Source of the DNA: Octopus sinensis
Lineage: Eukaryota
Length of the DNA stretch: 64,000 nt
Assembly (NCBI RefSeq): GCF_006345805.1
Contig: NC_043004.1
Span: 38,502,001 to 38,566,000 of the forward strand
Direction: 5' to 3'
A program made the position numbers and the translations under genes. Below, piece after piece: positions 26,146 through 39,379 of this stretch. The notes beneath the pieces were generated by a model. The model saw only the letters and a list, made by a program, of their open reading frames with translations. It had not been told where the DNA came from and made no database searches. Every line of letters starts with the position of its first letter. The stretch's first letter is position 1.

Positions 26146-26627
26146 AACTACAGGCCGGTCATTTTGGACCCCCTTTTATATTCGGCAGATGTAATGGTCT
26201 CTTCTTCGATACACGATTTCAACGATGTTGCGGAACTTATGTTGCTTCGTACCCTCGCATTTGTTGTGGAACAGCAGGTGCTGATCTTTCCACACAACTA
26301 TGCTGCAACAATGTAGCAGTAACAAAAAGTGCAACAGCGACTACTTGTTGTGGAAATACAGCTCTAGATCAAAACACTCAATTATGCTGCAACGGCATTG
26401 CTGTAGCGAAAAGTGCAACAGCGACTACTTGTTGTGGAAATACGGCTATAGATGGTAACACTCAATTATGCTGCAACGGCGTTGCTATAGCGAAAACTGG
26501 AAATCAAATTTGCTGTGGAGGATCTGTTAGAGACCTCTGGTATGGCGGATGTTGTGGTGGAAGGGCCATCCAGTATTTTGGAAGGTTGTGTTGTCTATGG
26601 CCTAACTTCTGGCGATGTCGAGTTTAA
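26146..26627 (+). CDS. Galaxin-like di-cysteine repeat secreted protein, terminal coding exon (paralogue 1)
   Basis: 10 CC dipeptides plus 2 single Cys, with a 28-aa (84-bp) repeat. Branch-like CTGAT and TTTTGCAG acceptor at 26145 (phase 1). AATAAA near 26915 and 27019. The upstream signal-peptide exon was not identified. Confidence 0.8.
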
Positions 26628-27264
26628 TCATAAGTACACATTAGCTCCTCCTGATTCTCGAACGGCTCAATAATTTTATACGACAATGTGGTCGATCTTG
26701 TCTCAACATTTAAATCACATATATTTACATGTATTATATACATTTATCAGTTTTACCATGTTATAAATGATGCTATTATTAATGTATATTTTAAAACGAT
26801 GCACAGCAATTAGTTTTCTTCATGTAAAGTTTCTTTTAACTCCGTTTCACATTAATAGTTTTTTGGGGGTTTTTTTGCTTTATCTTTGGTAGTATCATTC
26901 TACAGAAAATTAAATAAACGAATACCATCGGTAAAATAGGATTTTGCGTGCATTTTTCTTATTTTTTCTTTTGACAAAGGCAAATTCAGTAAAGTCGCTA
27001 ATATGTTATAAGTATTTCAATAAAAACAATTCGACATGTCTCTTAAACAATGTTGTTTTACTTTCCTAAATGCTACACTAATTTCCAATTTAAAAATATT
27101 TGCATGGAACGTAATTTGTATATGTGTATATGATTTGTGTGCGACTGAGTGAAAAAGAGAGAGAAAGAGAGAGAGAGAGAGAGAGAAAAAGAGAAAGAGC
27201 GAGAGATAGAAAGAGAGAAAGTGAGAGAGAGAAGGAGAGAAAGAGAGAGAGAGTGTGACATGAA

Positions 27265-27700
27265 GTAAGTACCTCTGAGCTGTATCCAAGAGTGATGAGA
27301 GACAGGATCCCGACCTGGATACTGGAATTACAGATGCTGGCACTGCATACGATCCTCATTGAAGAAGAGGTTTCTACAAAAGCCAAACTCGATAGCTTCA
27401 ATTCGATTTTATGCCTATTGTCAATTAAGCTTATAAATATTGAGTACTGAAAGTGTACAATCAAGCACACCTGCGGTTCAAAGGGTCTTCTTCACAAGGA
27501 TCCTAAGAGTAACCTACTCGTCAGGGTGTGTAACACGGAGATCAAGGAAACTTGTCTTCAATAAGCCGCTATTTCACAGCACTGAGAGATCAGAGCTCCA
27601 GTACAGCGGATTTGTGATGAGGATGGTGTGAGAACAAATCGCTAAACCGATACTTCAATCGACCAGGAAATCAAGGATTTGCTTAAGAGCCAGATGGTTT
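27265..27700 (+). mobile_element. Degraded RTE-like LINE C-terminal fragment (mirror at 37850-38285)
   Basis: Frameshifted RILRVT..RVCNTEIK..PLFHSTERSELQYSGFVMRM resembles the RTE C-terminal motif. Confidence 0.55.
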
Positions 27701-27749
27701 AATAATAACAATATTGGTGAGTTACAGACGTTTTGACACTTTCTTCAAA

Positions 27750-35459: not shown

Positions 35460-36354
35460 GTGACTTAATGTTTATTTTTAATAACGTAATCCTTGTATTT
35501 TTGCTACGGAGAGTTCTAAATAAGGGAAAGTAGTGAGTGATTTCTTCCGGTGTAAGGGAGATAATCGCTTAGAAAAAATTTTTTTTCCTTTAGTGTGAAT
35601 TTCTCTGTATTATTGAGTTCGGATAGTTGAGTCTGGGTTTGTACTTTTCAATGAAGAATATATATATATTGAATATATATATATATATATATTGAAGGAA
35701 AATTTTTATACATTATATTCAACATAGTGGTGTTTCTGTTTCTTTGATCTATGTTTTGTATTCTAGTGATTTTTCATTTGTTTATATATATATATATAAT
35801 ATATATATATATATATATATATTATATATATATATATCTTACGCAACAGATCTATTCATGGTAATATCAACTTCCTTTTTTCTGGAAGTTACCGTGCATC
35901 TCTAGTCTTAGCTTCATGCCTAATTACGAATATTTTATTTTTTAATTTTGTTCTGTATACTCTAACTATTTCTCCGATACCAAGACTGTGGCTTTGTTGG
36001 TTTGCTTCAAAGAAACCTTTCTTGCCTTGATATATATTTTCCTGTTCGCTCCCTTTCACCTATACCTAATTTCGTTCTTACTCTGTTAATTCACATGTAT
36101 AAACTAGACTCCTGTTTGCCTACTGACAACTAATCGTATTGGTAATTTGACTTAGCTTTTTCGCTCTGCCAGTTTGAAGTGGCCAAATTAGTTAATCACT
36201 CATTTATCTCCTTACGACGATGCAAACAACCAAAGTAAATTGAACCAGAGGGTTAGCTAAACTGCTTTTGTATGTGTTACATGTTATGTAAGACATACAT
36301 TTTATCTTTGAAATATATGCAGTTTGTATTTAACTTTTCCATCTTTTCCATATT

Positions 36355-36793
36355 TCTCTTTTACCTTTTACTTGTTTCAGTCATTTGACGGCGGCCATGC
36401 TGGAGCACCACCTTTAGTTGGAGAAATCGACCCCAGGACTTATTCTTTAGAAGCCTAGTACTTATTCTATCGGTCTCAATTGCCGAATCGCTAAGTTACC
36501 GGGACGTAAACACACTACCATCGGTTGTCAAGTGATGTTGGGGGACAAACACAGACAAACACACACACACACACACACACACACATAAACACACACACAT
36601 ATATATATATATATATATATATATATATATGCATATATACAACGGGCTTTTTTCAGTTTCGGTCTACCAAATCCACTCACAAGGATTTGGTCGGCCCGAG
36701 GCTATAGTAGAAGACACACGCCCAAGGTGTCACGCAGTTGAACTGAACACGGAACCATGTGGTTAGTAAGCAAGCTACTTACACACAACCACT
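36355..36793 (-). mobile_element. tRNA-SINE family A, full length
   Basis: Homologous to 7909-8352. Confidence 0.85.
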
Positions 36794-38918
36794 CAAACAT
36801 TTTAAACTTTCATTATCATATATTAACTGCACCTGGTCATCTATACAAGCTGTATACACGCTTGATGTTTATTACCCTCCTCTACCAGGTTCTTTTCGGC
36901 TACCACTACATAGTGGGTTGTACTTTAAAGTGCTTAGGCACCTTCTCCATATATCAAAAGCACCTAGCAGGATTACTACGCGTGACAAACTGAGAACATG
37001 AAGATTTATTCATGGTATCTTGAGACTTTATCTAAAGAGAATCTAGTAATTTCAAAGAAAAAGAGTTAATCATTCAAGTAGGATCCTCTGCTTTCTAGAC
37101 ACTTATTGTAGTGCTCCAGCAAAATTAAAATCTTGTAATAAAACTCTTCTAATATGAAAGTGCCCAGAACACTTTCCAAAGCCTCCAATGTCGGTTTCAG
37201 TTCGGGGAACATTCAAAGGTTTCGAAGAGCATGTTCTGTACTGCAGGATGTATGAGGAATAGTTTTCATGTCCATTTCTTTCAAGTAGTTGGTAACCAGG
37301 ATAGAATTATGAATTGGTGCATTGTCCTGATGTAAATACTCAAGCCTCTTCCGAGAAAATCTCTCTCGGAACTCCTTCAAAACTTTCTCAAAGTAAATTT
37401 TGTTGATTGTCTGACCAGAAGAAACCCAGTGGATGTAGATGGCACCGTTACAGTCGGAAAAGCGGATTATCATGAACCTCCCATTAGACTTACTTTACCT
37501 AGCCACTTCTGCTAGCAAAAAACAGATGTTCGGCACATACCAGTTAATTCATAAAATTTCATATTTCTCTACGGCTTTTTTCCCCCAATTCAACACACAA
37601 GTTCATTTACTGGAGAGCTTGTAAGTTGACCTCACGTCCATAGTGAATTCTTCACAATGATCACTTGTGAAAAGCAGTGTTTAGTGGAATGTGTCCCAAG
37701 TACCGTTACAATCACTTTTATATTTTGTAACAAACGGTGGCATGTCAGCTTATTTTAGTAATGATATACGATAATCTAGGACAGTTATATCTGTTTCTTC
37801 GAAGAAAGTGTCAAAACTTCTGTAACTCACCAATATTGTTATTATTAAACCATCTGGCTCTTAAGCAACTCCTTGATTTCCTGCTCGATTGAAGTATCGG
37901 TTTAACGATTTGTTCTCACACCATCCTCATCACAAATCCGCTGTACTGGAGCTCTGATCTCTCAGTGCTGTGAAATAGCGGCTTATTGAAGACAAGTTTC
38001 CTTGATCTCCGTGTTACACACCCTGACGAGTAGGTTACTCTTAGGATCCTTGTGAAGAAGACCTTTTGAACCGCAGGTGTGCTTGATTGTACACTTTCAG
38101 AACTCAACATTTCTAAGCTTAATTGCCAATAGGCACAAAATCGAATTGAAGTTATCGTGTTTGGTTTTGTAGAAACCTCTTCTTCAATGAGGATCGTATG
38201 CAGTGCCAGCACCTGTAATTCTAGTATCCAGGTCGGGATCCCGTCTCTCATCACTCTTGGATACAGCTCAGAGGTACTTACTACATGTCACACTATCTCT
38301 TTCTCTCGTTCTCTCTCTCACTTTCTCTCTTTCTATCTCTCGCTCATTCTCTTTTTCTCTCTCTCTTTCTCTCTCTCTCTTTCTCTCTCTTTTTTACTCA
38401 ATCGCACACAAATCATATACACATATACAAATTACGTTCCATGCAAAAATTTTTAAATGGAAAATTAGTGTAGCATTTAGGAAAGTAAAACAACATTGTT
38501 TAAGAGACATGTCGAATTGTTTTTATTGAAATACTTATAACATATTAGCGACTTTACTGAATTTGCCTTTGTCAAAAGGAAAAATTAGAAAAATGCACGC
38601 AAAATCCTATTTCACCGATGGTATTCGTTTATTTAAATTTCTGTAGGATGATACTACCAAAGATAAAGCAAAAAAACCCCCAAAAAACTATTAATGTGAA
38701 ACGGAGTTAAAAGAAACTTTACATGAAGAAAACTAATTGCTGTGCATCGTTTTAAAATATACATTAATAATAGCATCATTTATAACATGGTAAAACTGAT
38801 AAATGTATATAATACATGTAAATATATGTGATTTAAATGTTGAGACAAGATCGACCACATTGTCGTATAAAATTATTGAGCCGTTCGAGAATCAGGAGGA
38901 GCTAATGTGTACTTATGA

Positions 38919-39379
38919 TTAAACTCGACATCGCCAGAAGTTAGGCCATAGACAACACAACCTTCCAAAATACTGGATGGCTCTTCCACCACAACATCCG
39001 CCATACCAGAGGTCTCTAACAGATCCTCCACAGCAAATTTGATTTCCAGTTTTCGCTATAGCAACGCCGTTGCAGCATAATTGAGTGTTACCATCTATAG
39101 CTGTATTTCCACAACAAGTAGTCGCTGTTGCACTTTTAGGTACAGCATCGCCGTTGCAGCATAATTGAGTGTTACCATCTATAGCTGTATCTCCACAACA
39201 AGTAGTCGCTGTTGCACTTTTTGTTACTGCTACATTGTTGCAGCATAGTTGTGTGAAACGATTAGCACCTGTTGTTCCACAACAAATGCGAGGGTACGAA
39301 GCAACATAAGTTCCGCAACATCGTTGAAATAGTGGATTGATGAAGGCACAAGGGTGTCCAAAATGATGGGCCTGTAGTT
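38919..39379 (-). CDS. Galaxin-like di-cysteine repeat protein, terminal coding exon (paralogue 2)
   Basis: Mirror of 26146-26627 and 21 nt shorter, with the same 22 Cys and an identical C-terminal 72 aa. Acceptor TTTTGCAG at 39380. Confidence 0.8.

Follow-up and report, generated by a model that had tools for sequence, protein, structure and literature searches.

A 64,000-nucleotide (nt) stretch of the Octopus sinensis genome (contig NC_043004.1, positions 38,502,001 to 38,566,000; chromosome CM016866.1), here called the window, contains two convergent, tail-to-tail copies, A and B, of a galaxin-like gene. We interpret these copies as an old inverted pair of paralogues that underwent adaptive divergence and, later, local gene conversion in O. 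sinensis, and give this interpretation a probability of roughly 0.72. Under this interpretation, an inverted segmental duplication older than the split between O. sinensis and Octopus vulgaris would hold two complete, paralogous genes that encode a small secreted protein and face each other tail to tail, with both types retained in each species. After duplication, the large coding exon would have diverged several times faster than the adjacent non-coding DNA. The changes would have affected the mature N-terminus, loops within the middle repeat and the C-terminal tail while sparing all cysteines, which is consistent with positive selection towards functional divergence. The B N-terminus would be derived, and A would have kept an ancestral C-N-G...CC spacing and barely altered since speciation. 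In O. sinensis, recombination between the arms would have homogenised about 450 bp, so that B received the C-terminal module of A, and A received the 3' untranslated region (3'UTR) of B. The variable N-terminus and invariant C-terminus reported in a preliminary description of this DNA would be the apparent result of that conversion.

The coding part of the last exon of copy A (26146-26627, forward strand) has a phase-1 acceptor, 159 codons and a TAA stop at 26625-26627, and is without annotation in O. sinensis. Its counterpart in copy B (38919-39379, reverse strand, read from 39379 to 38919) has 152 codons and a stop. The same splice acceptor, ttttgcag/AACTACAG, precedes both. Based on translation and codon alignment, the exons encode 159 and 152 residues, and the difference in length is a 7-residue (21-nt) indel. 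There are 17 replacements with the gap placement chosen by MAFFT (15-17 overall, varying with the position of the indel), and exactly two codon differences are purely synonymous (ACG/ACA and AGG/AGA). Both copies encode 22 cysteines. The final replacement occurs at residue 87 of 159, and the 72 C-terminal residues are identical. The counts first reported are thereby confirmed, as is the presence in both copies, despite the indel, of a single N-terminal cysteine. The preferred reading takes the two N-terminal cysteines as homologous and divides the indel into 5+2 residues, because the C-N-G...CC spacing of A also occurs in other octopus paralogues. Differences between the copies number 23 per 279 aligned bp in the 5' part of the exon, compared with 2.9% in the flanks, and fall to zero in the 3'UTR over 26628-26898. 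The 3'UTR of A (26628-26918, forward strand) ends at the poly(A) signal ATTAAATAAA (26909-26918). Within the exon, copy A has three tandem 84-nt (28-residue) CC-repeat units (26261-26512, forward strand; detected as repeat families and by TRF with a period of 84), mirrored in B by units of the same period (39044-39295, reverse strand).

Copy B corresponds to the annotated O. sinensis galaxin-like protein XP_036361078.1, and the two are identical across all 168 residues. The coding part of exon 1 (54592-54637, reverse strand, read from 54637 to 54592) encodes MLKSLIIFAFLLLVK plus one nucleotide and is followed by a GTAAGA donor. Spliced onto the last exon, it yields exactly the 168-residue protein. 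Intron 1 (39380-54591, reverse strand) spans 15.2 kb and is of the GT...AG type, with the acceptor TTTTGCAG. The leader, followed by ELQA, is hydrophobic by inspection and modelled as a helix by AlphaFold2; by inspection, the exon 1 peptide would form the hydrophobic core of a putative signal peptide. A TATA-like sequence, CATAAATATAGG (54695-54706, reverse strand), located 58-69 nt upstream of the ATG, is a candidate promoter element of B.

Membership in the galaxin family, proposed at the outset, is supported by matches to the Pfam profile PF24748 (Galaxin_repeat), which scores 74.6 bits for A (E = 9e-21) and 68.7 bits for B against a cut-off of 28 bits. The matches span nearly the whole 131-position model. 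Each copy has two single cysteines in addition to ten CC pairs, which are spaced 10-13 residues apart, and the CC columns are nearly invariant among 57 homologues. The profile search returned galaxin-like proteins only, and the best non-self matches are at most 41% identical. The proteins are predicted to be secreted. In mature form they have about 150 residues, an isoelectric point of about 8.5 and a net charge of +5 to +7. An AlphaFold2 model based on a 57-sequence alignment (pLDDT 88) consists of an N-terminal helix (the leader) and then about 20 short beta strands arranged as a ladder, with the variable N- and C-terminal ends being the parts of lowest confidence. Sequence-profile searches of the PDB and Foldseek searches identified no structural relatives (best match E = 2.5, TM < 0.2).

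The two copies are embedded in arms that extend well beyond the exons. Arm A (20851-28592, forward strand) includes part of intron 1, the last exon and about 2 kb of downstream sequence. Arm B (36949-54180, reverse strand) is longer due to insertions. Blocks shared by the arms are 89-98% identical in a self-BLAST comparison, the arms diverge by 2.5-5% in addition to kilobase indels, and the inner boundary is sharp (28592/36949). The originally described interval, 26146-39379, is too narrow, given the reach of both arms and the position of B exon 1 at 54637-54592. A 6.1-kb retroelement-derived insertion in the B intron (45940-52084), bounded by an (ATT)n run and containing an RVT_1 open reading frame (ORF; 45989-46501), is common to B of O. 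sinensis and B of O. vulgaris; arm A has a clean empty site at 22672. Part of this insertion (46052-47909) is about 93-95% identical to positions 683-2515 of the window.

The O. vulgaris locus, which we obtained in two steps (as L001 and L002), is collinear with the window and 97-98% identical, and has the same inverted pair. Below, the O. sinensis copies are labelled A_S and B_S, and the O. vulgaris copies A_V and B_V. B_V is CAI9726649.1, the positional orthologue of O. sinensis B. The last exon of A_V (L002 18615-17966, reverse strand) encodes 215 residues of an annotated 231-residue product, with 16 residues from exon 1. Because A_V has two extra 84-nt CC-repeat units relative to A_S (215 versus 159 exon-encoded residues and 30 versus 22 cysteines), repeat number has changed since the split, and the count of 22 cysteines is not the invariant it had been taken for. 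A four-way alignment of 3 kb contains 53 informative sites of the paralogue type versus 3 of the species type, and arms resemble their orthologues more closely than their paralogues. Since the inverted pair is present in O. vulgaris, the sites divide 53 to 3, and the retroelement insertion is shared, the duplication is older than the split between the two species, each of which keeps an A-type and a B-type copy. The split has been put at 2.5 million years (Myr) ago (PMC10700109).

A pair of alleles could in principle be mistaken for such paralogues, and so could a misassembly, for example a haplotig or the folded-back end of a contig; arm A does start exactly at a scaffold gap. This explanation is extremely improbable. 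Both arms and the 8.4-kb spacer between them occur in one contiguous stretch (20851-64000 is free of gaps and holds both copies), the arms differ from each other by the percentages and kilobase indels noted above, and the independent O. vulgaris assembly has the same pair, with orthologous arms closer than paralogous ones. The convergent copies are paralogues, as initially described, and not the alleles that were then considered as an alternative.

Comparison of all four copies places the identity between A_S and B_S in a different light. Over 26446-26898, they differ at 1 of 453 positions, whereas the divergence of the flanks would lead to 12.9 differences (Poisson P = 3e-5). From the four-way pattern, the identical C-terminus and 3'UTR represent a gene-conversion tract of about 450 bp that appears specific to O. 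sinensis. The invariant scaffold of the preliminary description is not supported, and in O. vulgaris the paralogues differ at 13 of the last 35 residues. In the C-terminal coding tract (26417-26607, forward strand; 39129-38939 in B), A_S, A_V and B_S are the same and B_V alone differs, by about 30 nt. The 150-bp bin at 26487-26636 contains 24 B_V singletons and zero paralogue-type sites. The C-terminal tail of B_V reads RKFMYWGKF...QWFTF, and B_V singletons are also spread over the middle repeat, where B_S is of the A type. In the 3'UTR tract (26675-26898, forward strand; 38871-38648 in B), A_S, B_S and B_V are the same and A_V alone differs, at 14 sites. Paralogue-type sites restart at 26899, just ahead of the poly(A) signal. 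Most likely, conversion in the O. sinensis lineage proceeded from A to B over the coding part, a direction that we infer, and from B to A over the 3'UTR. If the coding sequence was indeed converted by A, O. sinensis B is a chimera with a B-type N-terminus and an A-type C-terminus. A three-way comparison suggested a single conversion from B to A; this reading gave way to the two opposite directions once the fourth copy was included.

A different history is conceivable for the coding part, in which the ancestral A and B already shared this sequence and the C-terminal difference arose as a burst specific to O. vulgaris B, through ectopic conversion from an unknown donor or clustered mutation. We consider this possible but doubtful. 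It accommodates the finding that B_V alone differs in 26417-26607, and the many codons with two to three changes, together with a synonymous divergence of 0.18 in this tract, suggest a templated event. However, three events would be needed (ancestral homogenisation, the burst and a separate 3'UTR conversion), and no donor with the B_V C-terminus was found in profile searches or in searches of 1.8 billion representatives. The B_V singletons in the middle repeat, where B_S has the A type, fit instead with paralogue differences that were erased in B_S.

Rates of nonsynonymous (dN) and synonymous (dS) substitution were estimated by the method of Nei and Gojobori, with significance assessed by Fisher tests. 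For A_S and B_S, the whole exon has a dN of 0.064 and a dS of 0.044 (dN/dS 1.46, p 0.24). With the conversion tract masked, the values are 0.114 and 0.040 (dN/dS 2.8, p 0.05-0.11). The unconverted pair, A_V and B_V, has a dN of 0.163 and a dS of 0.055 over the whole exon (dN/dS 3.0, p 0.004-0.009), and its N-terminal 68 codons have a dN of 0.129 and a dS of 0.011 (dN/dS 11, p 0.01). Taken together, estimates of dN/dS for the O. vulgaris pair are 3.0-4.8 (p 0.004-0.011). The ratio of dN to dS thus remains above 1 once the converted tract is masked, as anticipated in the preliminary description. Moreover, dN is 3.5-6 times the divergence of flanking non-coding DNA (p 1e-4 to 2e-19).

The excess of replacements could be attributed to ongoing diversifying selection on an N-terminal recognition or antimicrobial part, combined with purifying selection on an invariant 22-cysteine C-terminal scaffold, as originally proposed. 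In the first 87 residues, replacements far exceed synonymous changes, the N-terminal region has a dN/dS of 4.7, and all four genes retain all of their cysteines. Even so, we find this version of selection quite unlikely. The identical C-terminus and 3'UTR are a conversion tract, with the overwritten sequence revealed by the A_V 3'UTR and the B_V C-terminus; the last residues differ between the O. vulgaris paralogues; cysteine number varies between 22 and 30; and the test limited to O. sinensis is not significant over the whole exon. A_S and A_V differ by only two nonsynonymous and three synonymous changes, with one residue changed in the N-terminal region, which makes the N-terminal differences between A and B old and fixed. 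Most of the between-species excess in B also vanishes if B_S was converted by A. Because A is nearly unchanged between species and dN exceeds dS, the data point to a burst of adaptive divergence following duplication, and not to continuing diversification of the N-terminus. The C-N-G...CC spacing of A recurs in five other galaxin-like paralogues from octopus, so the A-type spacing is ancestral and the B-type N-terminus derived. With O. vulgaris P0002 as the outgroup, A would instead be derived; this reading was dropped once the A-type copy of O. vulgaris was found and the paralogues showed the A spacing to be ancestral.

Several observations weigh against our interpretation of paralogue divergence followed by local conversion. 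Because no outgroup exceeds 41% identity (a search of 1.8 billion representatives for an outgroup orthologue returned nothing above this value), the tree lacks a root, and the coding conversion is polarised by parsimony. In the C-terminal tract, dS is raised (0.18; 3.5 differences over 21.5 sites) and many codons carry multi-nucleotide changes, so the changes there could reflect a templated or clustered mutational event and not selection. The Fisher tests count adjacent changes as independent. If the flanks were homogenised earlier, their divergence may understate the age of the duplication, and the unconverted 3'UTR stands at about 6%. Finally, exon 1 of A is unassembled and A is unannotated in O. 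sinensis. As regards the 3'UTR, including its start within 26608-26674, divergence between A_V and the other copies is, like that of the exon, above the 2.5-3% of the intron and downstream sequence. The excess in the 3'UTR and exon suggests either earlier homogenisation of the flanks or faster mutation of the transcribed exon.

The missing first exon bears on whether A is functional. A tblastn search of the window with the B leader peptide matched only exon 1 of B itself. A 56% identical peptide match at 33228-33275 (forward strand) was considered as exon 1 of A and rejected as chance, as it has no DNA similarity and is on the wrong side of A. The sole run of Ns in the window, a 100-N assembly gap at 20751-20850, coincides with the outer end of arm A. 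Homology of arm A begins at 20851, equivalent to 54180 in B, and B exon 1 is 412-457 bp farther out. Since the homology runs right up to the gap, exon 1 of A is most likely unassembled within it rather than absent, and the gap probably accounts for the annotation of copy B only by NCBI. Beyond the gap, the search for a continuation of the duplication yielded only an isolated 58-nt match (96% identity, inverted; 19629-19695 versus 55571-55657) in otherwise unalignable flanks. On the B side, this match is located about 1 kb upstream of exon 1; on the A side, it is about 1 kb short of the gap. It may be a remnant of an outer duplication or a small conserved element.

It could nonetheless be argued that the A duplicate has fallen silent or is decaying, and that its differences reflect relaxed constraint rather than adaptation. 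Consistent with this, A is unannotated and its exon 1 is not in the assembled sequence, and exact look-ups of four possible A products in public collections gave no match to an A-type protein. We judge silence or decay unlikely. The ORF, acceptor and poly(A) signal of A are intact in both species, the few changes between A_S and A_V include more synonymous (three) than nonsynonymous (two) ones, and O. vulgaris annotates a spliced A product of 231 residues. Relaxed constraint is unable to raise dN above the neutral rate, and it is B that appears to be the derived, faster-changing copy. The missing exon, as described, coincides with the assembly gap.

An ATG in the intron of A (26085-26087, forward strand) is in frame with the exon solely in A-type copies, and the product would begin MCLSVILLHALICVFCLYFAELQ. 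In A of both O. sinensis and O. vulgaris, the frame results from a 1-nt deletion plus a T>A substitution within the polypyrimidine tract; in the B copies of both species, the ATG is out of frame. The region involved spans 26085-26145 in the window, and its O. vulgaris counterpart is L002 18676-18616 (reverse strand). The putative leader read from this candidate start is hydrophobic and resembles a signal peptide (MCLSVILLHALICVFCLYFA).

Gene conversion between the arms of inverted repeats is known from the palindromes of primate sex chromosomes. The octopus locus is similar in having inverted arms around a unique spacer and non-reciprocal transfer between the arms. It differs in that conversion affected a short part, about 0.45 kb, of arms that measure at least 7.7 kb, and the arms have otherwise diverged by 2.5-5%. 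Under concerted evolution arms are more alike within species than between them, which is the reverse of the 53 versus 3 sites found here, so general concerted evolution does not act on the pair. One extension of our interpretation is that the tail-to-tail arrangement serves as a device for shuffling modules. Two-way conversion would swap the C-terminal domain and the 3'UTR between two adaptively diverged paralogues to generate species-specific chimeric effectors, and repeat number would expand, as in O. vulgaris A, all of it under microbe-driven selection. In addition, the intronic ATG with its hydrophobic leader could give rise to a single-exon, secreted isoform of A. This idea is speculative and on the whole unlikely.

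Other features of the window are repeats and relics of mobile elements. The unique spacer (28593-36948, 8.4 kb) is collinear with O. vulgaris and contains transposon relics. These include a mariner-type HTH_48 transposase relic (31326-31703), accompanied by another ORF (32106-32375), and a 171-residue PIF1-helicase fragment (32657-33172, reverse strand), annotated in O. vulgaris as an 'ATP-dependent DNA helicase' gene and probably a Helitron relic. A hairpin in the spacer (34426-35087) has 202-nt arms that are 99% complementary and 258 nt apart, and is also present in O. vulgaris. A second inverted pair flanks it (34269-34387 and 35094-35212, 92%). The hairpin looks like a miniature inverted-repeat transposable element or a fold-back element. 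About 2 kb upstream of B exon 1 is a cluster of repeats that are about 99% identical (56345-57428), for example, 56345-56808 versus 56708-57171 in direct orientation and 56645-56902 versus 57428-57171 in inverted orientation. Direct repeats of about 1.5 kb (13693-15201 and 18031-19512; 92-96%) enclose reverse-transcriptase ORFs (15879-17612, reverse strand), a layout that looks like a retroelement of the long terminal repeat type. The search for further galaxin copies in the window gave only weak tblastn matches at 50.8-51.0 kb, which were rejected because they fall inside ordinary retroelement ORFs.

With regard to function, repeat peptides of the galaxins (EsGal) of the squid Euprymna scolopes inhibit bacteria (PMC12773714). 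The octopus proteins resemble EsGal1-10 (PMC12773714) in being small, predicted secreted proteins with tandem di-cysteine repeats and net positive charge that belong to a cephalopod family of multiple paralogues. However, they lack a close sequence relationship to EsGal (at most 41% identity), their charge of +5 to +7 is far lower than the +21.5 of EsGal1 (PMC12773714), and octopuses, unlike E. scolopes, have no light organ. Coral galaxin, from the skeletal organic matrix of Galaxea fascicularis, shares the CC-repeat architecture and the PF24748 match, but the octopus proteins are much shorter and the similarity is confined to the repeat pattern. By analogy, a microbe-directed role, either antimicrobial or in binding, is plausible for the octopus proteins. 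Relative to the database entries XP_036361078.1 and CAI9726649.1, the locus adds that B of O. vulgaris has a different C-terminal tail and that A is a second paralogue in O. sinensis.

Copy A is an additional, unannotated O. sinensis member of a known family, and the inverted duplication that carries it is ordinary but informative. The analysis draws attention to a gene copy missing from the annotation of O. sinensis and to a gap in its reference assembly. The known biology of the family stays unchanged until expression and activity are measured. The locus is also a cautionary case, as a domain that seems invariant between paralogues can be a conversion tract and not a sign of constraint. Galaxins are emerging as antimicrobial or symbiont-shaping proteins of cephalopods, and their evolution has hardly been studied. 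In this context, the locus is a compact natural experiment that combines a pair of paralogues with dN/dS > 1, a datable conversion event that would have made a protein chimeric in O. sinensis, and a change in repeat number in O. vulgaris, from which O. sinensis split an estimated 2.5 Myr ago.

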